Part shown: piece after piece, positions 1 through 25,220 of the stretch
How the letters are laid out: every line of letters starts with the position of its first letter
Numbering within the stretch: position 1 is the stretch's first letter
Assembly (NCBI RefSeq): GCF_000142905.1
Contig: NW_013657607.1
Location: 1-64,000, forward strand
Reading direction: 5' to 3'
From: Thecamonas trahens ATCC 50062
Taxonomy: Eukaryota > Protista > Apusomonadida
DNA: 64,000 nt
Notes under the pieces: model-generated
What the model was told of the DNA's origin: nothing
What the model saw: only the letters and a program-made list of their open reading frames with translations
Database searches by the model: none
Made by a program: the position numbers and the translations under genes

Positions 1-1939
1 TGGCCACAGAAATTGACAAACCACTTGGTTGGTGGTGGCTGTGGGTATGCGTGAGATCGGTGGGGGTGATGGGGTGGCGGGGTGGCGCACTTGGTCGGAA
101 TTCGTTGGTCAGGGTCTGGGGGTGATTATGGTTATTGCACCACACCCGTCCAGCCTCCACACGCTTGCCATCACTCGCCAGCCGTCGCGAGGCCGACCAC
201 CACCATCATCATCACCATACACCTCCCCACACACACATGCGCATGCATCCACATCCACATGCTCGCCATACCCACATCCACATCCCACCAACCCCAGCCA
301 GCCAGCCGTTGATCACAAATGATCACACAACCTCACCACCCACACCCCGCAATCAATCATCATCTACCACACACCACCCATCCCAGTCCCAGCCCAACAC
401 CCACATGCACTGGCCGTCGTCCGCGACCTGCCTGCCATCCACACATTGCCAGATGGCGCTGCCTGCGCCCTCCAGCTGCTGAAGATGAGACCCAGACACA
501 TGCGCCGAGCACAACTATGCCTCGCACATCCGCCACACAACCGTCATCGCTCTCCTGCAACCACCACGCCCGACCATCCATCCCATCAACCCCATCACCT
601 GCTGCTGCTCAACCATCCATGCCCACCCGTAACCGTGCTCTGCAATCCAATCACCCCTCATCGCACATCAACACTCTGTCCTCCTTTATCCCGATCTCCC
701 CCACACCTCCCCACCGCCTCCGCCAGTCCTCCGGATCGTCCTCGATCAAGCGAGGTCAGCCGGCCAGCTCTTCTTTGCTGGGCGTCGTGCTACCTCTACC
801 TGACAGCGACGTACCTTGCCAACCCCACCCATGTCCCTCGCCCGTTGTCCTCATCGCCGCCGCCCGCACACGCACCCTGGCTCACGCCCCGCGGCCGCAA
901 TCTGATCTCTGCCATCGAGGCGTTGCGCATGCCGACTGCCACGCCGCCGTTCATGGGCTGGGCAAACAACAAGCCGACCACGCTCCGTCGACCACAGCCG
1001 CACGGCAGCCTGGACACCACCGCCCTGGCAGTCGATGCAACGTCGTCGTCCTTCCTCAAGAGCGCGCTGCGGTTCCAGCTCGCCATCAAGCTAACAGCGG
1101 AAGCAACAAAGCCCTGTCCTGCTCCGCCCAGACGAATGGGACATCCGGTTGCTCGACGACAGCGAGCACATGCCATCACCCTTCCACACACTCGTCGTCG
1201 CCAGATCGCGCACACTCTCACCACATCCATGCCGCAGTCGGACACCAGCCATCCCCCCTCCCATCGCCACACCCAAGCCGCACATGCCGCGCCAGCTCCC
1301 AGCAAACGAGCACATGGCCCCCACACACACAAGTATGCTGGACATCCTCTCCAGCCCGATCTACCGCCTCACCCTCGCCTCGGCCTCCAATCGCCTCCTC
1401 AGCCACCCGTCCGACGCCCCCAAGGCCAACGCTAAAAAGCCAACCACGAACGATCCCGATCCCATGGGCCTCACCTCCCCCGAGTCGGACGACCGCAGAT
1501 CCCTCGTCGGCGAGCTGGCTGCCATGAACCCCCTCTGTGTACTCAACAAAGCTGATGCCCGCCTTCCATCGCCATCTCAACTTGCATACGACTGGCCGAC
1601 CGCTCCCTCACCCTCCCTCGCCCTAGCTACTCTGAACACAAACCCCCACAGCGACAGCCGCACGGAGGACCATGGCCATCAGCCGGATCCCATCTTCCAT
1701 GACGCAGACAGTACCACCCTTTCACACCACTCTCTGCCGCTATCCGTTGGATGAAGGCTCTAACAATACTAACAATCAAAATGGCAGGCGCAGTCACCGA
1801 GCTGCGACGGCATCGCAGCAGGGGTCGAGACCGCACGATCACGCCAGCATCGTCGCTTCCCCCCCCCTCGCCGACAATCGGTGTCCATCCGTCCGCCGTG
1901 CCTCGCAGAAGACCAACTCTGACGTCGTCGCCATCGGCT

Positions 1940-2429
1940 NNNNNNNNNNNNNNNNNNNNNNNNNNNNNNNNNNNNNNNNNNNNNNNNNNNNNNNNNNNNN
2001 NNNNNNNNNNNNNNNNNNNNNNNNNNNNNNNNNNNNNNNNNNNNNNNNNNNNNNNNNNNNNNNNNNNNNNNNNNNNNNNNNNNNNNNNNNNNNNNNNNNN
2101 NNNNNNNNNNNNNNNNNNNNNNNNNNNNNNNNNNNNNNNNNNNNNNNNNNNNNNNNNNNNNNNNNNNNNNNNNNNNNNNNNNNNNNNNNNNNNNNNNNNN
2201 NNNNNNNNNNNNNNNNNNNNNNNNNNNNNNNNNNNNNNNNNNNNNNNNNNNNNNNNNNNNNNNNNNNNNNNNNNNNNNNNNNNNNNNNNNNNNNNNNNNN
2301 NNNNNNNNNNNNNNNNNNNNNNNNNNNNNNNNNNNNNNNNNNNNNNNNNNNNNNNNNNNNNNNNNNNNNNNNNNNNNNNNNNNNNNNNNNNNNNNNNNNN
2401 NNNNNNNNNNNNNNNNNNNNNNNNNNNNN
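1940..2429. other. Assembly gap (N run)
   Basis: Run of N bases; ORFs that cross it are artefacts. Confidence 0.99.
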
Positions 2430-3945
2430 CTGCCAGGCCGCCACGGATTCCATCGAACGAGTCGTCACGGTCTGCTGATGAGCACTTGCCACTTCTCAGC
2501 GCTGAAGTGCTTGAGCCGCTCGGCGCCGCATCGTCTACCGAGGCCACTGCCGATACGAACATACGCCAGACGCGCTCGGTGTCGTCGAGGCCATACAGCA
2601 GGTAGATGGCACCCAAGATGGCCTCGGCTTGTACATCATAGGATTCCGAAAGCACAATATCACCCATGCCAGTGGCCTTGAGGTACTGTTGACACGCTTC
2701 CCGTGACTCCATGTCCTGCATGGCGCAAGGGTAAGCACCGTGTCGCCGATAAATGCCAGCCGCTTGAACGGTGTGTCGCTCTTGTTCGACGCGATGGCCG
2801 TGGCAATGACCGCGTTCAGCCACTCGTAGCTGGCGGGCATGCCCAAGACAGCCACCGTGTCATGAACCCGCTTGCGGACCCCGTGCACCCGCAAGTGCTT
2901 GCGCCCCATGGCCACCGCTTGGTCGATGGCGGCACCGCAATCTGTCGATGCCGGGAACTGAACCAAGCTTGTCGCATTGCCCTTGACGCAGCTGTTGTCG
3001 TCATTGGCATCGTCGTCCACCGGCACAGCCTCTGGACACTCGCGCCCGAGGACGGCCCAGAACGAGGACACATCACCCCTGTCAACAACCTCGAGAGGAT
3101 ACGTCCAAAGGTGCTTCTTGTTTGACCGGTGCACCAAAACGTGACCGATCGCGCCTTCTCGAGCTCTGCGCGGCCCTTGAAGCAGCGCATCAGCTCACCC
3201 CCGGCGCGAGACGCCTTGCCCGACGACTGGTCCTCCTCGACAAACTTGGCGGGCACGATCCACTCCTCGGCGACAGTGGGCCTGCGATTGTAGGCATACT
3301 CGTGGTAGTGGATGGGGCGGGCTGGGAGACACAGCATACAGCCATTACCATCCGCATCGATGTACACGAGCTCGCTCGGGCTGCCCCGCCCGCGCAGCAT
3401 CCCGAGCCCCTCGACCGAGTACTTGGCTGTGTCCGAGACTGCCACATCCGACGCCGCGTACAGCGCCTGCAGGAGCCGCACTGTTATCTTGTCCTGGCCG
3501 ACCACTACAATCAAGCGCGCCCGATTCAAGTCGACCCCGCGGCGGCTGCTTGTGTAGATGATACAGGACTTGAACTCGTTGTAGCTACTGACCATGACGT
3601 TCTCGCCATCCATGAGCTTCTCCAGCTTGGCCGACACAAGTAGTCCAGGACCATCGCAGGCTCGTCGCCGCGCGCCACCATCGGCAACAGGGCACGACCC
3701 AGTTTGGACGAGGTGCGTGGCGAGTCAAGCCCGATGGCAACCTTGGCACCAGCTGGCAGCGGCATGGGATCGCCACTGGCTTCTGTGGTTGTCCGTGTCT
3801 GCGAAGTACACGTGTTGGCCACGCTCGGATAGTGTGTGAAGGAGACGATGGCCTCGGCAAACTTGATCACATCCTCGTCGGAAGGGCTGCTGGGGATGTG
3901 GGCGTTGTGCCAACTCTCGTCTGCGAACACCTGAAGGACGCCCTC
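2430..3945 (-). pseudogene. Frameshifted gene with a C-terminal RNase III domain and possible upstream SF2 helicase-like motifs
   Basis: ORF 2535..3137 gives FKRLAFIGDTVLTL (RNase III signature ERLEFLGD / Mini-III LAYIGD). The adjacent frame gives ESREACQQYLKATGMGDIV...YDVQAEAILGAIYLLYG (second RNase III motif). Upstream frames give VFADESWH and YTSSRRGVDL (weak DExH motif II and motif V likeness). At least three frame changes (~3635, ~3130, ~2725). Confidence 0.6.
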
Positions 3946-4540
3946 CTACCGAGCCTCGATCGCGTAAAAGCATCCAGCTCTGCTTGCTACGCTAACATGC
4001 CTTGCCCTGCCGCCATGGGTACGGAACGGGGACCGATAAACGGGTTGTCGACTTGGCGGAGATCCGTGTAGAAGCGGTGTGTGTTGTGAGGTAGCCGTTG
4101 TCGTAGTTCTGAATCGTCCGTCGCCGAAAGAATTTGGTGATCACTGCTCCGCTCCCTCCACCTTCCCATTCCATCCAAGCATCGACACACACTCATCGGA
4201 CAGACTGACGGATGATGCAGATATCCATCCTCTTCCATCCCATCACCTGCTTGCTGGTCACGAGCCTGCTGTCCAGCAACTGGCCAGTCGATAAAGCCAT
4301 CCACGCATACTCCTCAGTCGTGGCCACGCCCCATGACGCACTTGCATCGCAGCGCTCGTCACAACTATGCTGGTGGGCAACGTGCGAGACATTGCCGTGA
4401 CCTCCGAGTGGGGTGAGCTCATATCTCAAATTGGCTCGCTCTACGTTGATCGCCACCGTGTGCTGCATGAGCAAGCGGTAGACGCGGAGAGGGAAGCTCG
4501 AGCACACTCTCTGCAACAAGCTCTCGCCATGCTCCCTGTA

Positions 4541-5401: not shown

Positions 5402-5466
5402 CCCAAACCCCCAAACCCCCAACCCCAACCCCAAAACCCAAACCCCAAACCCCAACCCTAAAGCCC
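5402..5466 (+). repeat. Degenerate telomere-like C/A tract (CCCCAA, CCCAAA, CCCTAA units)
   Basis: cccaaacccccaaacccccaaccccaaccccaaaacccaaaccccaaaccccaaccctaaa. Confidence 0.55.
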
Positions 5467-5840: not shown

Positions 5841-8408
5841 CTAGCGGCTTGCCTGGAAGGCGGCGATGGCATTGTCAACGTATTGGAGGATGTTGGCGCG
5901 GTCAGTCTGGAAGGCAGCGATGTTGCCCGTGGCGATGGTGACGTGATCCCTGACGTCGGCAAGCTCGGCCTCGGTGGCAGCGAGCTTGGCCCTGGTGTCG
6001 GCGAGCTCGGCGGCGAGCTCGGCCTCGGTAGCAGCGAGCTTGGCCTTGGTGTCGGCGAGCTCGGCCTCTAGCTTGTCCACGCGCGTGGCGGTTCCAGTCG
6101 AGGGGCCTGCGGCACCTCCGATGTCGCCACCGGCAACGATGGTGTCACGCACGTAAAGGGCCACTGGCTCGGGAACGGCCCCGTTGACGATGAGATTGTA
6201 GACCTCCTTCGCAGCCGCATTGGTGTCGCTACCGGGCTTGTTGAGCACAGTAGACGCAATGGCGAGAGCCGTCTCGGCGTTGGCGCCCAGAGACCACACA
6301 TCGGCGCCGGCAGCAAGCAGCGCCATGGTTGCCTGGATGTTGGAGAGCGAGACGGCAATGTGGAGGGGGCGCAGCCCAAGAGATGGTTCGAGGGCGTTGA
6401 TGTCGGCGCCCGTGTTGATGAGGAACGCGAAGACAGGGATGGGGAACGGGGTCATGTCACTGGCATGGAGGGCGATGAAGAGGGTGAGCGTGGCCTTGTT
6501 GATACCGTTGGCCAGCTCGTCCCCGCCATCAGCATTGGCCCGAAGTGACTCAATCATGAGACCGACAAAGGCTGGCGCATAAGATGCAGGCGAATGCACG
6601 TATGCGTGCTTGTTGTCATCGTCGAGGTCGTAGAGGTCTGCGCCGTAGGCAAGGAGCATGTTGAGAGTGTCGGGAGAGAGAGCGTTGCAGCGGGCCATGA
6701 GATGCACTGGAGAGGGCACATGGGCTCGATGGCAGAAGTGAGTCAGTGCTTGAAGGAGTTCTGGGCTGTTCGCAAGAGTGACAACGCCAACCAGAGCACG
6801 GGCATGCTGCGATGCAAGGAAGCCCGGTTCGGCGATGGCAGTGCGTGCGCGATGCAAGTCGAGAGTAACCTTGGAGCAGTTGCCCAAGTTGAGGGATGTG
6901 AGGTTGGGGCAGCCGCCGGCCACCGCCACCACTGCCGCATCGGTGATGTTGGAGCAGGCGGTCAAGTCGAGGGTTGTGAGGTTGGGGCAGCCGCCGGCCA
7001 CCGCCACCACTGCCGCATCGGTGAGCTTGGTGCAGCTCCGCAAGATGAGGGTTGTGAGGTTGGGGCAGCCGCCGGCCACCGCCACCACTGCCGCATCGGT
7101 GAGCTTGGAGCAGCGCCACAAGTCAAGGGTTGTGAGGTTGGGGCAGCCGCCGGCCACCGCCACCACTGCTGCATCGGTAATGTTGGAGCAGTTGCCCAAG
7201 TCGAGGGTTGTGAGGTTGGGGCAGCCGCCGGCCACCGCCACCACTGCTGCATCGGTGAGCTCGGAGCAGGCGGTCAAGTCGAGGGTTGTGAGGTTGGGGC
7301 AGCCGCCGGCCACCGCCACCACTGCCGCATCGGTGAGCTTGGAGCAGGCGGTCAAGTTGAGGGTTGTGAGGTTGGGGCAGCCGCCGGCCACCGCCACCAC
7401 TGCCGCATCGGTGATGTTGCGACAGCCGCGCAAGTTGAGGGTTGTGAGGTTGGGGCAGCCGCCGGCCACTGCCACCACTGCCGCATCGGTGAGCTTGGTG
7501 CAGTCGCCCAAGATGAGGGATGTGAGGTTGGGGCAGCCGCCGGCCACCGCCACCACTGCCGCATCGGTGATGTTGCGACAGCCGTGCAAGTTGAGGGTTG
7601 TGAGGTTGGGGCAGCCGCCGGCCACCGCCACCACTGCCGCATCGGTGAGCTTGGAGCAGCCGTTCAAGTCGAGGGATGTGAGGTTGGGGCAGCCGCCGGC
7701 CACCGCCACCACTGCCGCATCGGTGATGTTGCGACAGCCGTGCAAGTTGAGGGTTGTGAGGTTGGGGCAGCAGCCGGCCACCGCCACCACTGCCGCATCG
7801 GTGAGCTTGGTGCAGTCGCCCAAGATGAGGGATGTGAGGTTGGGGCAGCCGTCGGCCACCGCCACCACTGCTGCATCGGTGATGTCGTAGCAGTTGTACA
7901 AGTCGAGGGATGTGAGGTTGGGGCAGCCGCCGGCCACCGCCACCACTGCCGCATCGGTGATGTTGCGACAGCCGTGCAAGTTGAGGGTTGTGAGGTTGGG
8001 GCAGCCGCCGGCCACCGCCACCACTGCTGCATCGGTGATGTTGGAGCAGCTGTCCAAGTTGAGGGTTGTGAGCTTGGGGCAGCCGTCGGCCACCGCCACC
8101 ACTGCCGCATCGGTGAGCTTGGTGCAGTGGCCCAAGTCGAGGGATGTGAGGTTGGGGCAGCCGCCGGCCACCGCCACCACTACCGCATCGGTGAGCTTGG
8201 TGCAGCTCCGCAAGATGAGGGATGTGAGGTTGGGGCACATCTCCGCCACCACAGCTGCCATAGCGTCGGTGAAGGACTTGTTGGAGTTGCCACCTTTGCT
8301 CGCCGTCACCTCGCCCACCCCCACCCCATCCCCCAGAGCCCCTCTCACCTCCTCCACTGTCCTCGTATTCGACACGTCCACCGTCCGTCCAGCACCATTC
8401 GCAGCCAT
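5841..8408 (-). CDS. LRR (cysteine-containing, 26-aa) array + ankyrin-like repeats + C-terminal coiled coil, paralog 1
   Basis: 18 repeats of CPNLTxLxLxxCxxxTDAAVVAVAGG, then ankyrin-like GADINALEPSLGLRPLHIAV and heptads LAATEAE. Start placed at ATG 8408 (MAANGAGR) by similarity to the paralog starting at 12853. Confidence 0.9.
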   Translation of the reverse strand: MAANGAGRTVDVSNTRTVEEVRGALGDGVGVGEVTASKGGNSNKSFTDAMAAVVAEMCPNLTSLILRSCTKLTDAVVVAVAGGCPNLTSLDLGHCTKLTDAAVVAVADGCPKLTTLNLDSCSNITDAAVVAVAGGCPNLTTLNLHGCRNITDAAVVAVAGGCPNLTSLDLYNCYDITDAAVVAVADGCPNLTSLILGDCTKLTDAAVVAVAGCCPNLTTLNLHGCRNITDAAVVAVAGGCPNLTSLDLNGCSKLTDAAVVAVAGGCPNLTTLNLHGCRNITDAAVVAVAGGCPNLTSLILGDCTKLTDAAVVAVAGGCPNLTTLNLRGCRNITDAAVVAVAGGCPNLTTLNLTACSKLTDAAVVAVAGGCPNLTTLDLTACSELTDAAVVAVAGGCPNLTTLDLGNCSNITDAAVVAVAGGCPNLTTLDLWRCSKLTDAAVVAVAGGCPNLTTLILRSCTKLTDAAVVAVAGGCPNLTTLDLTACSNITDAAVVAVAGGCPNLTSLNLGNCSKVTLDLHRARTAIAEPGFLASQHARALVGVVTLANSPELLQALTHFCHRAHVPSPVHLMARCNALSPDTLNMLLAYGADLYDLDDDNKHAYVHSPASYAPAFVGLMIESLRANADGGDELANGINKATLTLFIALHASDMTPFPIPVFAFLINTGADINALEPSLGLRPLHIAVSLSNIQATMALLAAGADVWSLGANAETALAIASTVLNKPGSDTNAAAKEVYNLIVNGAVPEPVALYVRDTIVAGGDIGGAAGPSTGTATRVDKLEAELADTKAKLAATEAELAAELADTRAKLAATEAELADVRDHVTIATGNIAAFQTDRANILQYVDNAIAAFQASR
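6862..8238 (-). repeat. 78-bp coding tandem repeat, about 18 units
   Basis: Near-invariant gaggttggggcagccgccggccaccgccaccactgccgcatcggtga recurring every 78 bp, with a short variable segment between copies. Confidence 0.97.
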
Positions 8409-8968
8409 ACTTCCTTCACACTCGTCACACAGAGAGATATACCCCCCGCCCCAACCACCTTCCCCACACCTCCACCCACCCACCCTCCCTGCGGCCAATC
8501 GGCAGAAACCGAAAACCATAACAATTCCACAGAGAGTGTCCGCCAGAATTAACGCCTCCTCCACTACTCAGACCGCCCTACCATCCTCATTACCCACAAA
8601 CCCACACCCTCCCACCCACCCTTTGTCCCCATGCACACACCCACCAACACACCCCTCATCACTCCCTCTCCACCACATTCGCCGCACCTCCCACCCACCC
8701 TCCTCCACCCAGGTCGAACTCCCGGCAGTGTGCCGTCGACCGCCTTCTTTCCTTCTCTGCCCGCACCTCTGCCCCCACATTCCACACATGCACCACCTGA
8801 ATACCACCGCCGCCGCTCCGGAGTCGCCCCGCCCTGGTCACCTCCCCCGCCGGCCTCGCCCTCCACCCCTACCCATGCCTATCACTATCAACCCTCACCA
8901 TACCCCTTCCATCGTCATCCGCCCTCATCCATACCCCTACCATACCCCCCCACCCCCCATCCTGCTGA

Positions 8969-12815: not shown

Positions 12816-12852
12816 CCAGACAAAACAGGTACTCGTGTCTGTGTGTAGAAGT

Positions 12853-14408
12853 ATGGCTGCTGCTTATGGTGTTGGTCGACGTGTTGAGCTGAGCCGTGTG
12901 AGGACGGTTGAGGAGGTGCGGAGGATGGTCGGCAATGGCGCCGGCGTGGCCGAGCTTGTGGGTCAACGTAACAACAACCTTACCGATGCCATGGTCGAGG
13001 TGGTGGCGGAGAAGTGTCCCAGCGTTGTCTCCATCGACTTGACGGCCTGCTCACAGATCACTGACTTGGCGGTGATCGCCATCGCAAACAGCTGCCCCAA
13101 TCTCGTCTCCCTCAATCTCAGCAAGTGCCGCAATATCACCGATGTTGCTGTCGACGCCATCGCAAACAGCTGCCCCCACCTCACCGACCTCGACCTAACC
13201 TGTTGCTTCAACATCACCGATGCGGCTGTTGTCGCTCTTGCTGCTGCCGGTCCTCACCTCACCGACCTCAAACTAGCATGCTGCCCCATCAACGACGCGG
13301 CTGTGATTGCAGTCGCCGGCAGCTGCGTCAACCTCGCCACCCTCAGCCTCGGGAGGTGCTCCATCACCGACGCGGCGGTTCTTGCCCTTGCTGCAGGCTG
13401 CCCCAACCTCACTGACCTCGACTTGGACAAATGTCCCAAGACGACTCTGGACTTAGACAGCGCACGCGACACCATCAACAAGCCGGGCTTCCTTACATCG
13501 GACTACCTCCCTGCGCTATTCTATGCTGTTGCCCAGGACAACAACCCGTCGGTCCTCGCTGCTCTCGCCAGAATCTGCGAGCGAGCCAGGTGGCCTTCTC
13601 TCATCAGCATGCTGGCTCGCAGCAGTGCCCTCGACAACGACACCCTCAGCACGCTCATCGATGGCGGGGTGGGTCTTTTTGATCTCGACGATGACGGCAA
13701 CCACGTGTACGTCTACTCGCCAGAGTCGTCCGCGGCAGCCATGGCCGGCCCTATGATCGAGTCGCTCAGGGCCGACGGCGACGGCGACGCAGAGCTGGCC
13801 AATGGGATCAACAAGGCCACGCTCGCGCTCTTCGTTGCCCTCCGCGCCGCCGACACCATCCCCTTCACCGTCCCAACCTTTGCTTTCCTCATCAACTCCG
13901 GTGCCGACATCAACGCCGTCGAGCCCGTCCTCGGCTTGCGTCCGCTCCACATCGCTGTCTCGCTCTCCAACATTCTGGCGACTATGGCGCTGCTGGCAGC
14001 GGGGCCGACATGTGGGCTGTGGGCGCCCGTGGCGAGACTGTGATGTCGATTGCCTTGGCTCTACTCAGCAAGGCTGAACGCGATACCAGCGCTGCGAGGG
14101 AGATCTACAGCCTCGTGGTGGGGACAGCGTCCGTCCCCGAGCGGGTCGCGCTCTACGTCCGCGAGTCCATCGCCGGCGGCAATATCGGCGCAGCAGGTGC
14201 GTCGGCTGGATCTGCGTCGCGTGTTGAAGAACTCAAAGTCGAGCTTGCGTCGACCAGGGCCGAGCTTGATGCCGCTAAGGCCGAGATCTCGCTCATGCAG
14301 GACAAGCTCGCCGTGGCCGAGGGCGAGATCAAGGCCTTCCGAGACGACCGTGCACAGATCATTGCCCGGTTCGAGGAGACTGTCGCCGCCTTTCAGGCCA
14401 GCCGTTGA
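12853..14408 (+). CDS. LRR + ankyrin-like + coiled-coil protein, paralog 2 (one frameshift at ~14003)
   Basis: About 6 diverged LRRs, then ELANGINKATLALF and LGLRPLHIAVSLSNI shared with paralog 1. Adding one G to the run at 14001-14004 restores AAGADMWAVGA and joins ORF 14010..14408, which ends AAFQASR like paralog 1. Confidence 0.85.
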
Positions 14409-14929
14409 GTCGTGCGCATCCCGTCTCAGCTCAGCGACGAAGCTCTCCGCGGTCTGCCGTGGACCCATCGCGAAGCCATCGTCAAGGCCAAGCTCGGGTC
14501 AGATGCCGAGTGGTCGAGCACGTTTGGCCAGCTCTCGCGAGACGAGGTCGACGTGCTGGCGCGCGTAGCGCGAGAGATGCTCAAGCCGCAGGCGTCCAAG
14601 CTGTACTCGCGACGGGATCGCGCTGCCTCGCTGCGCGCGGTTGTGCCGTGCTGGCTGGGGACGCAGTGGCAGCTGGGTGCCGCAATGTGAAGTGAAGGTG
14701 TAGCTTTCGTGTGGAGAGTTGGGGTGGAGCTGTTGTGGCCGTGGTGCCTGATCATCACGGATCAGGCTGATCACCAATGTATATGCTGAGCCATCCCCCT
14801 CCGCCACCACAGAGTCACGCTCTTGCTGACTCTACCCCTTCCGGCGCCTTTCCCCCTCCTCAACCCCGAATCCCAACCAAAAGTGTGCCTCAAGTCATGC
14901 CGTTTCTCATGCAAGTGGCTAGCACTCGT

Positions 14930-15125
14930 CCATCGGACTTTTGATTGAGTCGGACCGGGCCATCAACGACGGTGTACCGAGCATCACCATAGCCACACTA
15001 GCTCTCCTTATCACCTTCCGGGCCTTCGCCAACCGTTTGTTCTTGGCCAGCGTTGTCTCGGAGCTGATCACTGCTGGCGCAGAGGTCAACGCAGTTCAAA
15101 CAGCCCATCATTCATGTCGCGTTTT
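14930..15125 (+). pseudogene. Decayed fragment of the ankyrin-like module of the LRR family
   Basis: ITIATLALLITFRA...VVSELITAGAEVNAV matches INKATVALFVTLRA...IVSELITAGADVNAV at 23650-23760; the DNA cattcatgtcgcg is shared. Confidence 0.75.
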
Positions 15126-15253
15126 GTCTCCACAGCACGACGCTCCGTTGGCCAGCATTTTTCCCGCCGGGTCGTGGACTCGCGGTAGCCGCACACTCCA
15201 CTGCACTCTCACCCACGACTGTAGCGAACAAGACGTTGGGCTGCACAGGCGAC

Positions 15254-18200
15254 ATGCGTTGGAACAAGGGTGCATCTCGTGTCTGTGTGCGGGTGTGTGT
15301 GTTGGTGCTGGTGGTGTGCGTGCTGGTGAATGCTGTACTGGGTGGTGGGAGGAGGCACGCGCCGTGGCAAAAGCCTAACGTTCCCCGGTGCCGGGCCGAG
15401 GTTGAGTCAGTGCAGAACACCCTTGTGACGGCTTTGGGCGGTGCAGCGTCTTTGGCTTTGGCTGACATCGATGGAGATGGTGACCTGGACGTGGCGACGG
15501 CACGACCAGCGAACAGTGGGCGGTCCCCCAAGCCAACATTGGTTGGTACGAGAACACCAACGGAGCCGGAAACTTCGGGCCGAGGCAAGTTGTCAGCCCT
15601 GTAGTACGCGACGCGTGGTGTGTGATTGCGGCTGACATCGATGGAGATGGCGATATGGACCTGGCGTCGGCGTTGAGTGGGCCTGGTGCCTACGACGGCA
15701 CGATTGCGTGGTACAAGAACACGGACGGGGCGAGGAGATTTGGGTCGCAGCGAGTGGTGAGCACTGCAGCGTACCGTGCGCGGTCTGTGATTGCGGCTGA
15801 CATAGATGGAGATGGCGATCTGGACTTGGCATCGGCGTCGTCGGGGCGAAACGACAAGATTGCGTGGTATGAGAACACTGACGGGGCCGGAACCTTTGGG
15901 CCACAGCAGGTGGTGAGCACAACAGCGCTCGGTGCGTCGTGCGTGATCGCGGCTGACATGGATGGAGATGGCGATCTGGACCTGGCGTCGGCGTCGGCGG
16001 GCGACAACAAGATTGCGTGGTACGAGAACACCGACGGGGCCGGGAGCTTCGAGCCACAGCAAGTGGTGAGCACTGCAGCGCGCGGTGCGGCGTCTGTGAT
16101 TGCGGCTGACATGGATGGAGATGGAGACCTCGACCTGGCGTCTGCGTCACGCATCGACAACAAGATTGCCTGGTACGAGAACACCGATGGGGCCGGGAGC
16201 TTTGGGCCGCAGCAAGTGGTGAGCACTGCAGCGCGCGGTGCGTCGTCTGTGATTGCGGCTGACATGGATGGAGATGGCGATCTGGACCTGGCATCGGTGT
16301 CGTGGGGCGACGACAAGATTGCGTTGTACGAGAACACTGATGCAGCTGGGAGTTTTGGGCCACAGCAAGTGGTGAGCACGGCAGCGGACGGTGCGCGATT
16401 TGTGATTGCGGCTGACATGGATGGAGATGGCGATCTTGACCTGGTCTCGGCGTCCTCGTCTAAGATTTTCTGGTATGGAAGCGTTACCGCCCCTCGCGTA
16501 TTTGCTGCTCCACAGATAGTAGACCCTCGGCGCTGGTCATCTGTCACTCCTGCCGACATCGACGGAGATGGCCGTCTTGATTTGGTCGCCGCGTCTGCCG
16601 CCAACGGCACCATTGTTTGGTACGACAACACCGACGAGCCGGCCTCCTTTGCTCTTGCCCAGGTGGTGAGCTCGGCCGCGTTTGGCGTTCAGGTCGTCAT
16701 TGTTGCCGACATCGATGCTGATGGAGATCTTGACATTGTGGCCGCCTCAACGTCGGAGAGCACCATCGCTTGGTACCCAAACTCAAACGGTCTCGGCACG
16801 TTTGGCTCCGCGCAAGTGGTCACTACTGCCGCCCTTGGCGTCCGCTGCATCATTGCCGCCGACATCAATGGCGATGGCCGCATCGACTTGGCATACTGCT
16901 CACCCGCCGACAACGTCATCGCGTGGCTCCCTAACACGAACGATGTCGTCATGTTTGGCTCTGTGCAAGTGATTACCGACTCCGCTCCCGATGTCTGCTC
17001 CATCGCCGCCGCCGACATTAACGCCGACGGGCGTATCGACCTGGCATTTGCCTCGCCTTTGGACGGCACTGTTGCCTGGCACGCCAACAACGACAGCCTC
17101 GGTACTTTTCGCCCCAAGCAAGTGATCAGCAGTACCTTGGTAGGAGCTTCCTTGGTGGTCGCCGCCGACATCGACGCCGACAGTCGCGTCGACCTAGTGG
17201 CGGCTTCATCTTCGAGCAATGTCATCGTCTGGTACCGCAATCGCGACGGTCTTGGAGGGTTTGGATCACAGCGTTTGATAAGCAGATTCGCCAATGGTGT
17301 CGTGTCCGTTATTGTTGTGGACGTTGATGGCGACAGCGATCTCGATGTGGTTGCCGCGTTGTCTTCTGATAATTCTGCCAGTTGGTTCGAGAACGCTGGC
17401 CGTGGATCGTTTGCGAGGCCCCGGGTGGTGGCCGCAGGCGTTGAAGACGTCGCTTTAGTCACAGCCGGCGACCTCGATGCTGATGGCGACCTTGATGTTG
17501 TGGTGACGTCGAGTAGTCTTACATGGTGCTCGCAGCTTTCGCGTGATGCCCTTCGCCGCTACCCAGAGCAGCGTGCCGAACTCGGGGGATCCTCTCTATA
17601 CGCTTGTCGCTCGAGTTCGATGACCACCGACTGCATTGCTGCATCTGTTCGGGCCGTTCCGCCGTGTTCGATCGTCACTCTCAACCTTCCGGCAGGTACC
17701 TACATCTGCTCCTCAGGCACAGTCGAGCTGAGAACTGGAGTGCGCCTTGTCTCATCAGGCGATGTTGTCTTTGACTGTAGCGCTGCAGACAATCGGCTTT
17801 TCTCCGTTGGTACGCCGTCCGGTTTCCTCGAGCTATCCAACGCAACCATTGATTTCAGCGGCAAGTCGGCATTGGTAGCTTTTGGTGGGGGCCTGATGGT
17901 TGAGTCTGGCGGGCACGTCCACCTGTCGAACGTCACGCTCTCCAACTGTGCCTCCTCCACGCACGGCGGTGCTATCGGAGTCCGTGGTCTTGGATCGTTG
18001 TTGACAATGACTGGGGCTCGTCTCCTGGGCTCGCAGGCCTCGAGTCGGGGTGGTGCGCTGGCAGTGTTTGGCCATGCTTTTGCAGAAATCGAGGCCACGA
18101 CGTTTATCGACAACAAGGCTCGCGCTGGCGGCGGGCTCTTCGTCGATTCCACCGCCGACGTGACCTGCACGAGCTGTGTTTTTACAGGTAACTCGGCTGT

Positions 18201-21004
18201 TGAGTCAGGTGGTGCTGCTCTTATCCGACCTGAAGCAACAGTCGTCCTCGACGCGAACGTGATGGTCAACAACTCGGCCCATGTCGGTGGCGCTGTTGCC
18301 GTCCTCGGCGAAGATTACGACCGCGACCCCCTCGTCTCGTCCACTGCACATCTCCGCACCAGTACACTCGATCCGCGCACCCTCGCTCCGACTGCTACGT
18401 TTACCAATGCGATCCTGCGAAGCAACCGCGCGTACCGTGGCGGTGCCATCTATGCCTGCGATGCTGTCCTTTCCATCACCGGTGCCAGCACCTTCTGGTC
18501 TGACAACACCGCCTCTGTCTCGGACGGCATTGATGCAACAGCGGCTGATGTATTCCTCTGCCTCCCAGATAGCAGTCTCGGGTTTCCGTTTGATCGGACA
18601 AACGTGTCCGGCATCCCGTGGCTTTCGTTGGACCCGTCTGTACTTACACAGCTCACAATCGCCGCCATCTCGACAGCTCCCGCAGAGCTGGAGCTGGTTT
18701 CGAGTCCCCCGACAACAGTTCCTGTTGGTGAGCAGCTGCGTGGCGGCAGCGCCGCTCTCCGCGATGCTTTTGGCAGTCGAGTCACCTATCTCGATGTAGA
18801 TCTCCGCCTCGAAATTGACCCAACACCCAACCTCGTGGTCACTACCTCTATGGACATACCCTTTTCGGACACCGTAACTGAGTTCAACAGCTCGCCGCTG
18901 ACCATCGTTAACGGAGCCAGCAAGCTCCCAGTTGCGCCTTGGACAATCAGCATTCCAGCGCCTTTGGCAGCATACCAGATCAGCCGTATTTCGGGTAAGG
19001 CAACTCTTGTACCTGCCGACTGCGGCCCAGGAACGTACAGGACCTCCGGTGATATTTGCATCCCCTGCCCGTCCGCTCAGTACTCGACCACCACCAACGC
19101 CGCCAACTGCACCCACTGCCCAACCCGCACGACCTCGCCCAAGGGCACCGCCGATCCGGGAGCCTGCACCTGTGTCCCGGAGTCCTACGCCCTGACCCAT
19201 CCGGTCTCGCCCGCCACTGGCTGCACGCTGTGCCCGACGGGCGCGGTCTGCACGGGCACAACCTCGCTCCCACGGTCCGCTCCTGGCTTTTACTCGTCGT
19301 CGTCGCCGATCGAGTTCATCGCCTGCACCAGGTCGCCCACCGTCGCCGCGCGTCGGTGTCTGGGCGACGACGCCTGTGCACCTGGCCGCGACGGGCGGCT
19401 ATGCTCGCACTGCGCGGCGCGACACTACTCATCGTCCGACGGTGAGTGCAGGGTCTGTCCTGCGGTGACCGGCCCGGGCCCGGTTGTGGTCACCGCCCTC
19501 ATCTCGGTCGGCTTTGCACTGCTGCTCTTCCTCGTTCTCCTCCAGCGGCAGACGTCCTCATCAGGGACGATGCTGATCTCGGCGCAGTCGTACGGGCGCT
19601 GACAGGCGCCGAGCGCTGCCATCTAGTGCGTCAGACGCTGCGATGGGCACGGGTGCTCTGGCACGAGATCGCGTTGGTGGTACTCGAGATCGGCTTGCTC
19701 TTGGCCCTTGTCCTTGTCGGTCTCTGCGAGACGTTCGAAGTCGTGGTCCTCGGCCTTGGTCTCTCGGCCATGATCGCCTACCTTGTGGTCGACCGCATTC
19801 GCACTGCCCGCGCCTCCACTGCCGCCAGTCAACGCAAGCGCGCACTCATGCCCGCAATTGATCTTGATGACGTCTCTGTCGGCGCAACCTACACCCTCTA
19901 CCGCTCATCGTCGTCGTCGACAGACGAAGGGGAAGACGACGGCGTGGGCTTGGGTATGGGGACAGCTGCGGGGATGTCCGCACCCAAGGCCGGGACCGGA
20001 TCCGAGGTGCACCTGCTTGAGGCTGCCATCAAGACTCTGGTCGTCCATCTGCAGACTCTGGCTGCGCTCGTGGGCGTGTACGACCAGGTGGCGTGGTCCA
20101 AGTCGATGGAGGTGGTGGGCGCGCTAGTGTCGCGAACGACACTGCAGGTGACCGGGCTCGAGTGCAACGGCATCGACTTTGCCGGCGAGTATTATCTCTT
20201 TCTAGCGCTGCTACCTATACTCCTGGTGGCATTGGGTGCTGCCACCGTCATTGTCCGGGTCCTGCTTGCGTCGGCCGGGAGCAACAGTGAGGGCGTGGTC
20301 ATGGCAGGCGTGGCTCGGTCTAGGCGCGTTCGGACATTGGCAACGGCAGCGGGCAAGTATGCGCTCATCACGCTCTACTTTTCGTCTTTCCCATCGCTTC
20401 CAAGTCGCTAGCGCTATTTGCCTGTGTGCCCGAGAACGTCTCGCACCCGCGCGCATCGTACCTCGCCTCGGCGCCGTGGATGGCGTGCTGGCGCGGGCGC
20501 CATCTAGAGCTTGTGGTTGTCGCCGGCGTTGTGCTTGCCGCGATTGCGTGCACAGTAGCGTTTGTCGCAACTCGGATGTGGTATGCCATCAACGGCGCGG
20601 GGACCACGTCTGCTTACGCTTTTCTCTACACAGGCTTTACTGCTCAGGCGTGGTGGTTCGAGGGCGTGGTGCTCGGTCGTCGGTTCGGAGTGGCTGTCTT
20701 TGTCTCGATCCTGCCGCGCGGCTCGGTGTTTGTGGGACCGATGCTCCAGTGTGTGCTGTTGGCGTACCTGCTGGCCTTGGTCCTTATTCGGCCGTATCGG
20801 GCGGGGCTGGCGCTTCAACTGGAAATCGGGGCGGCGGTGATGGCACTTGTGTCGCTCATGCTCGTGTCGAGCATGGCTGAGACGGGCGAGACATCGTCAC
20901 TGGCGCTGATGACGCTCATGTTTATTGTCGGCAACGGATGCGTGGTAGTTGTCGGGGTCACCACGCTCCTCGTGCCGGCCATCAAAGCGCTTCGCGCCCT
21001 GTAA
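15254..21004 (+). CDS. Large receptor-like protein: signal peptide, FG-GAP/VCBS repeats, Pmp-like parallel beta-helix, Cys-rich repeats, multi-pass membrane domain (3 frameshifts)
   Basis: MRWNKG...VLVLVVCVLVNAVLG; about 13 ADxDGDGDLDL repeats; GGAI/GGAL/GGAV with FxxN motifs; CxxCP repeats; multiple hydrophobic helices. One added base at ~15527, ~19596 and ~20391 (all C or G runs) joins ORFs 15236, 15622, 19446 and 20426. Confidence 0.85.
15620..16475 (+). repeat. ~153-bp coding tandem repeat (FG-GAP units), about 6 copies
   Basis: gtgattgcggctgacatggatggagatggcgatctggacctggc and caagattgcgtggtacgagaacac recur with high DNA identity. Confidence 0.9.
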
Positions 21005-22034: not shown

Positions 22035-22786
22035 NNNNNNNNNNNNNNNNNNNNNNNNNNNNNNNNNNNNNNNNNNNNNNNNNNNNNNNNNNNNNNNNNN
22101 NNNNNNNNNNNNNNNNNNNNNNNNNNNNNNNNNNNNNNNNNNNNNNNNNNNNNNNNNNNNNNNNNNNNNNNNNNNNNNNNNNNNNNNNNNNNNNNNNNNN
22201 NNNNNNNNNNNNNNNNNNNNNNNNNNNNNNNNNNNNNNNNNNNNNNNNNNNNNNNNNNNNNNNNNNNNNNNNNNNNNNNNNNNNNNNNNNNNNNNNNNNN
22301 NNNNNNNNNNNNNNNNNNNNNNNNNNNNNNNNNNNNNNNNNNNNNNNNNNNNNNNNNNNNNNNNNNNNNNNNNNNNNNNNNNNNNNNNNNNNNNNNNNNN
22401 NNNNNNNNNNNNNNNNNNNNNNNNNNNNNNNNNNNNNNNNNNNNNNNNNNNNNNNNNNNNNNNNNNNNNNNNNNNNNNNNNNNNNNNNNNNNNNNNNNNN
22501 NNNNNNNNNNNNNNNNNNNNNNNNNNNNNNNNNNNNNNNNNNNNNNNNNNNNNNNNNNNNNNNNNNNNNNNNNNNNNNNNNNNNNNNNNNNNNNNNNNNN
22601 NNNNNNNNNNNNNNNNNNNNNNNNNNNNNNNNNNNNNNNNNNNNNNNNNNNNNNNNNNNNNNNNNNNNNNNNNNNNNNNNNNNNNNNNNNNNNNNNNNNN
22701 NNNNNNNNNNNNNNNNNNNNNNNNNNNNNNNNNNNNNNNNNNNNNNNNNNNNNNNNNNNNNNNNNNNNNNNNNNNNNNNNNNNNNN
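22035..22786. other. Assembly gap (N run) covering the start of LRR paralog 3
   Basis: N run between the conserved upstream block and the first LRR. Confidence 0.99.
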
Positions 22787-25220
22787 CAACATCGACGCCA
22801 TGGCCATGGTGGTGGTGGAGATGTGCCCCAACCTCACATCCCTCGGCTTGAACGGCTGCTCCAACATCACCGATGCGGCAGTGGTCGCCCTCGCCGGTGG
22901 CTGCCCCAACCTCACAACCCTCAACTTGTACAACTGCTCCAACATCACCGATGCGGCAGTGGTCGCCCTCGCCGGTGGCTGCCCCAACCTCACATTCCTC
23001 GGCTTGGAAAACTGCTCCAACATCACCGATGCGGCAGTGGTCGCCCTCGCCGGTGGCTGCCCCAACCTCACAACCCTCAACTTGTCCTCCTGCTCCAACA
23101 TCACCGATGCGGCAGTGGTGGCGGTGGCCGACGGCTGCCCCAAGCTCACATCCCTCATCTTGCGGAGCTGCACCAAGCTCACCGATGCGGCAGTGGTGGC
23201 GGTGGCCGGTGGCTGCCCCAACCTCACAACCCTCTCCTTGTACAACTGCTCCAACATCACCGATGCGGCAGTGGTCGCCCTCGCCGGTGGCTGCCCCAAC
23301 CTCACAACCCTCAACTTGAACAACTGCTCCAAGGTTACCCTCGACTTGCGTCGCGCGCGCACTACCATCGCCCAACCAGACTTCCCTGCATCGCAGCACG
23401 CCCGTGCTCTGCTCGGCTTTGCTCAAGCCCATGTGCCCCATCCGGTGCATCTCATGGCCCGCTGTAACGCTCTCTCCGTGGACGCGCTCAACACGCTGCT
23501 TGCCAACGGCGCAGACCTCTACGATCTCGATGATGACAACAAGCACGTGTACGTGCACTCGCCCGCATCCTCTGCGCCGGTCTTTGTCGGCCTCATGATC
23601 GAGTCGCTGCGGGCCAACGCAGACGGCGCCACCAAGCTCGCCAACGGCATCAACAAGGCCACCGTCGCCCTCTTTGTCACCCTCCGCGCCTCACCGACCG
23701 TCCCGATCTCAGCCGACATCGTCTCCGAGCTCATCACCGCTGGTGCAGACGTCAACGCTGTTGAACCCACGTTCAATACGCCCGTCATTCATGTCGCGGC
23801 TGCCAACACGGAGCACGGTGCCCTCAAGGCTCTCCTCGAGGCAGTTGCCGCCCTCGACGTCGTCCTCGACCAGTCTGCCGTCGACGGAAACAGCGCCACT
23901 GTGCTCGACACCATTATCGCCGCGAACCAGCTGACAGCTGAGCGTATGGCCGAGTTGGGCGGAGTTGGTCTCGATCCCTTCATGCTGCAGCCGGACAACA
24001 CGCATGTGTACGTAGCTGCTCCCGTGGAGCGATCTGCAGCGTTCTCATCTGCGATGGTCGCCTGGATCCGCGAGCATGGCGATGGCGCCACCGAGCTCGC
24101 CAACGGCATCAACAAGGCCACCGTCGCCCTCTTTGTCGTCCTCCGCGCCTCACCGACCGTCCCGATCTCAGCCGACATCGTCTCCGAGCTCATCACCGCT
24201 GGTGCAGACGTCAACGCTGTTGAACCCACGTTCAATACGCCCGTCATTCATGTCGCGGCTGCCAACACGGAGCACGGTGCCCTCAAGGCTCTCCTCGAGG
24301 CAGTCGCCGCCCTGGATGTCGTCCTCGACCAGTCTGCCGTCGACGGAAACGGCGCCACTGTGCTCGACACCATTATCGCCGCGAACCAGCTGACAGCTGA
24401 GCGTATGGCCGAGTTGGGCGGAGTTGGTCTCGATCCCTTCACGCTGCAGCCGGACAACACGCATGTGTACGTAGCTGCTCCCGTGGAGCGATCTGCAGTG
24501 TTCTCATCTGCGATGGTCGCCTGGATCCGCGAGCATGGCGACGGCGCCACCGAGCTAACCAGCGGCATCAACAAGGCCACCCTCGCCCTCGTCATCGTTC
24601 TTCATGCCGCAGACACAATCCCGTTCTCCATCCCTGTCTTCGCCTTCCTCATCAACTCCGGCGCCGGCATCAATGCCCTCGAACCGTCCCTTGGACTGCG
24701 CCCGCTCCACGTCGCCGTCTCGCTCTCCAACATCCCGGCAACCATGGCGCTACTCGCCGCGGGTGCTGACCTGTGGGCTCTCGGTGCCAACGGCGAGACG
24801 GCATTTTCGATTGCCTCGGCTGTGCTCAACAAGCCTGGCAGCGACACCAACGCGGCTGCAAAAGAAGTCTACAACCTCATCGTTGGTACAAGCTCTATCC
24901 CGGAGCGTGTTGCTGACCACGTCCGTGAGACCATCGCTGCTGGTGGCGACATTGGCGGCGGTGCAGGCGCCTCTGCTGGGACCTCCACTCGCGTGGACAA
25001 ACTCGAGGCCAAGCTCGCCGACACCAAGGCCGAGCTCGCCGACACCAAGGCCGACTTCGCCGACACCAAGGCCGAGCTCGCCGACACCAAGGCCGAGCTC
25101 GCCGACGTCAGGGATCACGTCACCATCGCCACGGGCAACATCGCCGCCCTCCAGGCCGACCGCGCCAACATCCTCCAGCACGTCGACAAGGCCATCGCCA
25201 TCTTCCAAGCACGCCGCTAG
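22787..25220 (+). CDS. LRR + duplicated ankyrin-like module + coiled-coil protein, paralog 3 (5' end in gap)
   Basis: 7 LRRs of the same 26-aa type, two extra 153-aa modules, LGLRPLHVAVSLSNI, LADTKAE heptads, ends IAIFQARR. Confidence 0.9.
23622..24539 (+). repeat. 459-bp in-frame tandem duplication (2 copies)
   Basis: Units start at 23622 and 24081, and the junction motif recurs at 24540; only a few substitutions separate the copies. Confidence 0.95.

Follow-up and report, generated by a model that had tools for sequence, protein, structure and literature searches.

The first 64,000 nucleotides of contig NW_013657607.1 of Thecamonas trahens ATCC 50062 (the stretch analysed here, hereafter the window) contain, at positions 5841-8408 on the minus strand, a gene for an 855-residue protein whose tandem, near-identical leucine-rich repeat (LRR) units differ chiefly at residues predicted to line a concave binding surface. 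We read this gene as a member of a soluble protein family diversified in the germline by ‘high internal conservation’ (HIC), in which recombination homogenises the scaffold and selection acts on the binding face, and we put the probability of this reading at about 0.7. A first-pass annotation of the same DNA, made from the letters alone, had proposed a diversifying recognition receptor in a protist, and the host is indeed one.

Tandem Repeats Finder (TRF) reported a single array at 6870-8237 with a period of 78 bp, 17.5 copies and 88% matches, and in the translation the motif CPxLT occurred 18 times at a spacing of exactly 26 residues. With the unit register fixed at the cysteine of CPNLT, units run from 8237 down to 6834. 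Seventeen of them are full 78-bp (26-residue) cysteine-containing LRR units (6912-8237, minus strand; assigned from TRF, the translation, an FBXL2 alignment and an AlphaFold2 (AF2) model). Unit 18 (6834-6911, minus strand) is truncated, keeping the strand half SLNL-GN-CSKV, and its helix half gives way to a C-terminal cap (CSKVTLDL..RAR) common to all paralogs. The 78-bp tandem array of the first-pass annotation is real, but it starts at 6834 rather than 6862 and holds 17 full units and a truncated one instead of 18. Units 4, 7 and 9 are identical at 78 of 78 bases, unit 11 matches them at 77 of 78, and the pairs 6/10 and 1/16 agree at 76 of 78. No higher-order period was found in this or any other array of the family, mean identity being independent of unit offset.

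Variation within the unit is confined to few positions. Nineteen of the 26 unit positions had little or no amino-acid entropy; values of 0.9-2.8 bits were reached at positions 6, 8, 10, 11, 13, 14 and 15. Summed nucleotide diversity was 6.9 over the 21 sites of these seven variable codons, compared with 1.6 over the other 57 sites, in agreement with the earlier statement that the variation is concentrated and not evenly spread. The helix half of the 17 full units carried six synonymous GCG/GCA changes, four units being affected at codon 18 and two at codon 22, as well as four non-synonymous changes, each in a single unit, and stretches of ~48 bp of identical scaffold lie on both sides of every variable core. 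Mean identity between units was 79% at the amino-acid level and 88% at the DNA level; the corresponding amino-acid values for arrays on contigs C34, C74 and C113 were 88%, 85% and 86%. Re-extraction of the residue pairs that precede the cysteine (RS, GH, DS, HG, YN, GD, HG, NG, HG, GD, RG, TA, TA, GN, WR, RS, TA, GN) reproduced the earlier list and its recurrences exactly. The variants described as mosaics, in which TA is combined with SKL, SEL or SNI, are also present, but each is explicable by one or two point changes; for that reason neither they nor the choice of D or N at codon 8 is informative about recombination.

Non-synonymous (pN) and synonymous (pS) differences were estimated by Nei-Gojobori counts over all unit pairs. 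For the seven variable codons pN was 0.41 and pS 0.066, against a pN of 0.014 and a pS of 0.063 in the scaffold (pN/pS 0.22). We also chose the codons independently, defining variable codons from the 89 units of other arrays only (codons 6, 8, 10, 11, 14 and 21); at codons 6, 8, 10, 11 and 14 of the present array, pN was then 0.413 and pS 0.064. Bootstrapping over units (300 replicates) gave non-overlapping ranges of 0.33-0.43 for pN and 0.04-0.08 for pS, and pN exceeded pS in every replicate. The variable codons keep C at the third position and differ at the first and second, and the same excess of pN over pS was seen in the arrays on C34, C74 and C113. The first and second positions of core codons changed approximately six times faster than synonymous sites, and since synonymous divergence is equal in core and scaffold, the variable core is not older than its surroundings. 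Excess amino-acid change at the groove positions, as the first-pass annotation had supposed, was thus upheld with independently chosen codons, at a pN about six times the synonymous rate. Codon bias does not account for the constancy of the scaffold, because the non-preferred codon ACA is retained in the scaffold of 18 of 18 units and the same residues are encoded by other synonymous codons (GTC GCC CTC, GGT) in a sister scaffold flavour.

These rates bear directly on whether the array is a neutral young tandem duplication whose variable positions are unconstrained surface residues that drift. Such an origin would sit well with units that average 88% identity, three of them identical, with ‘mosaic’ variants many of which need one or two point changes, and with a 64-kb window in which tandem arrays of many kinds are common. 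Drift, however, predicts that pN and pS should be about equal, whereas the variable codons gave 0.41 for the one and 0.066 for the other. Arrays on other contigs are variable at these codons too, as is an unrelated array from a metagenome. We consider neutral duplication improbable.

A mutational source of a different kind, a diversity-generating retroelement, was considered since the variable codons are mostly NNC with Asn the commonest residue, a pattern reminiscent of adenine mutagenesis of AAC codons. It was ruled out: the adenines of scaffold codons 3, 5, 16, 17 and 19 are invariant, positions other than adenines vary (C/T at the second position of codon 6 in sister arrays; C/G at the third position of codon 14), and no reverse transcriptase is encoded in the flanking open reading frames (ORFs).

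The array aligned with FBXL2 (6o60_C) unit by unit and without gaps (E = 4e-57). An AF2 model built on a 114-row alignment of FBXL-like relatives had a mean predicted local distance difference test score (pLDDT) of 94.9 and a predicted TM-score (pTM) of 0.90, and a Foldseek search with it returned FBXL2 (6o60_C) as the top match (TM 0.81), together with FBXL17 (0.74-0.83), TIR1, COI1 and ribonuclease inhibitor. A single-sequence AF2 model was discarded (pLDDT 69, an all-beta convex side and Foldseek TM about 0.2). In the alignment-based model each unit has a three-residue strand at positions 6-8 and a ten-residue helix at positions 17-26. In LRR solenoids L7 and L9 point into the core, so residues 6 and 8 should face the concave side. 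On the DSSP register and canonical LRR geometry, this confident model places residues 6 and 8 on the inner-face strand, 10-11 in the turn at the rim and 13-14 after the structural cysteine. The variable positions would therefore occupy outward strand residues and the following turn of an FBXL-like horseshoe, as expected from their earlier assignment to the concave face. Across the family, positions 8, 10 and 11 are 33% Asn, 18% Tyr, 13% Ser, 10% Asp and 8% Gly, which looks typical of binding surfaces.

The arrays show concerted evolution: the scaffold differs between arrays more than within this one, with a pS of 0.063 within the array versus 0.21-0.34 to other arrays. The non-repeat tail differed from that of the paralog 15 kb away at a pS of 0.455, and sister arrays on different contigs at a pS as low as 0.00-0.13. 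DNA haplotypes of the helix half are largely private to single arrays: one occurs in this array only, an ACT variant mostly on C34 and a GTG-ATC variant only on C74. Among 106 family units there were 62 distinct seven-residue modules, and just one of those found here recurs in any other array, that of the neighbouring paralog AMSG_12426. The AMSG_12426 array also contains a 109-bp mosaic patch (23101-23209, plus strand) made of two exact pieces of the 18-unit array, one of 50 bp (8116-8067, the unit 2/3 junction) and one of 58 bp (7051-6994, unit 16), embedded in units of another scaffold flavour. Judged by this match, the patch is a trace of exchange between paralogs, and it serves as evidence of recombination where the mosaic variants do not. 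The proposal that the constant scaffold serves as a recombination handle thus holds in an evolutionary sense (array-specific scaffold variants, arrays of 4 to at least 28 units, the 109-bp patch), but no sign of programmed or somatic reassortment was found, the gene being a complete germline ORF.

If reshuffling were nevertheless programmed, or somatic and frequent during clonal growth, cells of one culture would carry different arrays, much as in lamprey receptor assembly or in the highly unstable het-E and het-R arrays of Podospora. The ~48 bp of identical scaffold around every variable core, the identical units at non-adjacent positions and the patch copied between paralogs would all favour such a process; the contig-end position of the family fits recombination-prone regions, and measurable rates of rearrangement are documented for such arrays in fungi (PMC2873952). 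Set against this, the gene is a complete ORF and not an incomplete germline gene with flanking cassette libraries, its surroundings showed no recombinase, deaminase or reverse transcriptase, and one coherent array came out of the single assembly. As for the remaining 78-bp arrays of the window, they too belong to full genes and do not form cassette libraries. Each family locus that we checked has an ORF made up of head, array, cap and tail; runs of N or contig ends break several of these. Lamprey variable lymphocyte receptors (VLRs) had been cited as a precedent, and we found no sign of their type of somatic assembly in this complete germline ORF, which lacks cassette libraries. Somatic reshuffling is in our judgement quite improbable.

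A separate concern is that the order and number of units, or the whole array, is an assembly artefact produced by collapse or chimerism of paralogous reads. The family has at least 107 similar units, spread over 11 contigs; many contigs break off within or beside family genes, and several members contain runs of N. Such repeats are reported to defeat short-read assembly (PMC12222747). All 17 full units, however, share a scaffold flavour (GTG GCG GTG GCC GGC) that is rare elsewhere, and because of this and of the almost private module set a chimera of other loci is unlikely. The reading frame is also intact over 855 codons, and every array shows the hypervariability pattern independently. We therefore give little credence to an artefact.

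The gene itself (5841-8408, minus strand) is a complete, intron-free coding sequence for an LRR-ankyrin-coiled-coil protein, defined from the ORF list, the translation and Pfam. The open frame spans 5841-8564, with the stop codon at 5841-5843; its first ATG is at 8408, and the resulting start, MAANGAG, is common to the paralogs. An exact-product look-up returned no record of the 855-residue product in the protein collection, and likewise none for the family member P0024. The N-terminal head (8238-8408, minus strand; 57 residues) is specific to the family and conserved among paralogs, with no Pfam family in residues 1-56. The array follows, matching LRR_4 (2e-62), LRR_6 (1.9e-51) and related Pfam LRR families. 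Next come the cap and ankyrin-repeat region (6081-6833, minus strand), in which Ank_4, Ank and Ank_2 matched at residues 657-719 (window 6252-6440). These ankyrin matches are weak but consistent, and in an exhaustive protein search residues about 46-200 of the query matched multi-ankyrin proteins in their thousands. The tail (5844-6080, minus strand) is a coiled coil of AELADTK-type heptads, visible in the DNA as 21- and 54-bp repeats (TRF rows 5957-6068), and its heptad number differs between paralogs.

No signal-like or membrane-spanning hydrophobic segment was found in the protein, head included, and the absence of a signal peptide stated in the first-pass annotation was confirmed. Pfam gave LRR and Ank families only, and thus no NTPase (NACHT, NB-ARC), kinase, TIR, death-fold, Roc, COR or other signalling domain. 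Of the idea of a recognition receptor or sensor, the diversifying binding face is supported and an actively shuffling receptor is not; no signalling domain accompanies the binding face, just ankyrin repeats and a coiled coil, and a receptor role is putative. Paralogs carry the public name ‘F-box/LRR-repeat protein 2’, which would make the protein a substrate receptor of an SCF ubiquitin ligase, and among solved and named proteins those nearest to the LRR domain are indeed FBXL2, FBXL17, TIR1 and Skp2. However, no F-box was matched in the full 855-residue protein (Pfam, E <= 0.01) or in the 56-residue head, the conserved head is unrelated to F-boxes, and the LRRs are followed by ankyrin repeats and a coiled coil instead. 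The public label ‘F-box/LRR-repeat protein’ reflects LRR similarity only, and an SCF role is very improbable.

A search with the non-LRR tail recovered approximately 14 genes and three fragments of this family in the T. trahens assembly (28.7 Mb, 131 contigs), among them the named paralogs AMSG_12426, AMSG_11238 and AMSG_12420. Arrays of 78-bp units were found on 11 contigs, from which 107 units were extracted genome-wide. The members share a conserved head, an LRR array of 4 to at least 28 units, a conserved cap, one to three copies of a 153-residue ankyrin module and a coiled coil with a variable number of AELADTK-type heptads. Ankyrin-module and heptad numbers thus differ as well as unit numbers, so the family varies in three separate repeat regions. 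When the tail was searched against 5.8 billion and 1.8 billion proteins, close relatives came only from T. trahens, apart from P0004 (a JGI metagenome); more distant matches were generic ankyrin proteins.

Three further members illustrate this variation. The neighbouring paralog AMSG_12426 (21939-25217, plus strand), 15 kb away, has seven LRR units, mostly of a VALAGG scaffold flavour, and three ankyrin-like modules, two of which (459 bp, 153 residues) form a tandem pair with 97% matches at 23622-24590. Its heptad repeats (25006-25146) differ in number from those of other paralogs. AMSG_11238 (12667-14405, plus strand) is an older member: its LRRs, about six in number, are heterogeneous and non-homogenised, and it ends in the ankyrin and coiled-coil tail of the family. 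A second older member with ordinary heterogeneous LRRs lies on C39 (P0024). Because these two older members carry heterogeneous LRRs, the homogenised arrays are the derived state in the family. Runs of N (1940-2429 and 22035-22786 in the window, and others in L031, L034, L037 and L039) interrupt a multi-copy block shared by contig ends, described below, and several family genes; the run at 22035-22786 falls in the 5' part of AMSG_12426. Unit counts of genes interrupted in this way are consequently lower bounds. Two fragments of the C-terminal domain (C49:304981-305253 and C44:14247-14420) have in-frame stops, lie 10-14 kb from contig ends and are probably pseudogenes, and a third (C105:1360-1644) has no in-frame stop and lies on a 6-kb contig.

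Every family member lies at most 30 kb from a contig end or on a contig shorter than 12 kb, and most adjoin a 4.4-kb multi-copy block. In the window this block occupies positions 1-4369, and at least nine other contigs (C74, C61, C102, C87, C96, C70, C34, C113 and C48) carry a copy of it at an end, 93-97% identical and always in the order contig end, block, LRR-family gene. The 5' end of the gene faces the block in most copies; the gene with the 18-unit array is inverted. ORFs of the block (1-4369) matched no Pfam family, and no telomeric repeat was found at contig ends. The block could be a subtelomeric element, for which ‘subtelomere-like’ is a reasonable but unproven description. A (CCCCAAA)n-like tract at 5402-5466 sits just downstream of the stop codon of the LRR gene; it was rejected as a telomere, as it is unique in the 28.7-Mb assembly and on no contig end. 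Genes for FG-GAP repeat receptors (15254-21004 in the window; 8.1-10 kb in L031; L039) adjoin LRR-family genes at several contig ends. They are 70-76% identical to one another and appear to have been co-duplicated with the LRR family.

Relatives of the family were also present in environmental DNA. Three contigs of one metagenome (L054, L055 and L056) are 92-99% identical to family members. L054 (JGI metagenome 3300026264, contig Ga0207991_1017377) matches window positions 12847-14719 at 99.0% and joins that match, in a different order, to a piece of the FG-GAP gene (14854-15501, 95%), which suggests that the locus has been rearranged in a close relative of T. trahens. Alleles of the array itself were not recovered: the exact 48-nucleotide scaffold pattern had no match in metagenome contigs, and a protein-guided metagenome scan returned four short contigs, none with an array. 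Separately, metagenome assemblies from ENA contain CC-type LRR arrays with the same ITDAAVVAVASGC scaffold (P0195/L059, P0184/L060, P0196, P0249 and P0160). These have high internal conservation, a different N-terminal head and come from GC-rich eukaryotes. In the L059 array the same codons vary, with a pN of 0.35 against a scaffold pS of 0.20. Their occurrence in such metagenomic eukaryotes suggests that the design is under-reported.

Several known systems resemble parts of this picture. The HIC repeats of fungal NOD-like receptors (NLRs), which are of the WD, ANK and TPR types, consist of near-identical units with few positively selected codons on the binding face, and they undergo concerted evolution within and between paralogs with instability of repeat number (PMC4986451, PMC2873952). 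The present family shares with fungal HIC NLRs (Podospora HET-E, HET-D and HET-R; nwd) homogenised repeats, a selected binding face, exchange, variable unit number, multigene organisation and, probably, a cytosolic location. It differs from them in its cysteine-containing LRR, a repeat type not reported for fungal NLRs, in its lineage (Apusomonadida), and in having neither a NACHT or NB-ARC domain nor an N-terminal effector domain; the variation in number seen here is, moreover, between paralogs. In behaviour, fungal HIC repeats are the nearest parallel. In structure, the 26-residue unit LxxLxLxxCxxITDxxhxxhaxxCxx is that of the cysteine-containing, RI-like LRR domains of FBXL2, FBXL17, Skp2 and TIR1, but unlike FBXL proteins the present one lacks an F-box, has units that are homogenised and not individually diverged, and ends in ankyrin repeats and a coiled coil.

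The other comparisons are more distant. In the LRR-ROCO family of Ectocarpus, proposed as a fast-evolving recognition repertoire, each 24-residue LRR is a separate 72-nucleotide phase-0 exon shuffled via introns and joined to Roc-COR (PMC3341825). Like the present family, it consists of protist LRR proteins whose unit number varies and whose solvent-exposed strand residues are under positive selection (PMC3341825), but the units here are 26 residues long, lie in one uninterrupted ORF and are not linked to a GTPase. Module shuffling of the Ectocarpus kind, which had also been raised, was contradicted by units that are not separate exons and by the lack of Roc or COR. Lamprey VLRs likewise have a diversified LRR concave face and reassort whole LRR modules; unlike these products of somatic cassette assembly, which are secreted or membrane-bound, the T. 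trahens family consists of complete germline genes for soluble proteins. Transcription activator-like (TAL) effectors of bacteria are built of near-identical tandem units in which a hypervariable di-residue per unit sets specificity, and their repeats recombine. They are secreted proteins with an unrelated helical, DNA-binding fold, and to the LRR array they bear a resemblance only. What is new here is the repeat type, the architecture and the lineage; the evolutionary design itself is already known.

Under germline HIC diversification, the array would be the domain with which a soluble and probably cytosolic protein binds its ligand. Within arrays and between paralogs alike, the identical scaffold would be subject to unequal crossing-over and gene conversion, keeping it homogeneous and altering the number and order of units, and selection would favour amino-acid change at the outward strand residues and in the turn after them. 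The paralogs would thereby come to form a repertoire in which each has its own concave surface and presumably its own binding specificity, presented on oligomers that the coiled coil holds together. The groove may bind varied ligands (molecules of prey, parasites, viruses or conspecifics), the coiled coil presumably oligomerises, and the diversification seems to be germline rather than somatic.

Several points weigh against this reading. Pairwise pN/pS on units that convert one another is a heuristic whose assumptions are broken by gene conversion, units within an array do not represent independent lineages, and the strong bias to C-ending codons may depress pS somewhat. Fungal HIC repeats are defined as at least 85% identical over at least 100 residues, and the mean unit identity of 79% here falls just under that value. 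Unit order and number are those of one assembly, with three units identical. Contig ends carry no telomere repeats that would mark the location as subtelomeric, and since repeats break assemblies, they would come to lie at contig ends anyway. Finally, for a protein that lacks a signalling domain, ‘receptor’ would be only an analogy.

A bolder version is that the contig-end arrays form a contingency repertoire that rearranges often during clonal growth, in the manner of Podospora het-E and het-R, for non-self recognition or allorecognition. We regard this as unlikely. If true, a Thecamonas population would keep producing new cytosolic binding specificities, and the family would be an NTPase-free LRR counterpart of the fungal HIC receptors in the sister lineage of animals and fungi, perhaps widespread in protists, as arrays such as that of L059 might indicate.

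Apusomonads are the free-living organisms most closely related to animals plus fungi. The T. trahens family bears all the evolutionary marks of recognition proteins that diversify fast (a homogenised scaffold, a binding face under positive selection, turnover in copy number, and clusters at recombination-prone contig ends), built on LRRs and without a nucleotide-binding and oligomerisation (NOD) domain. If the family is functional, the HIC strategy would be a general and probably convergent eukaryotic route to binding repertoires and not a peculiarity of fungal NLRs. It would then also offer a tractable system for studying LRR specificity codes, as its units differ at only five to seven defined residues.

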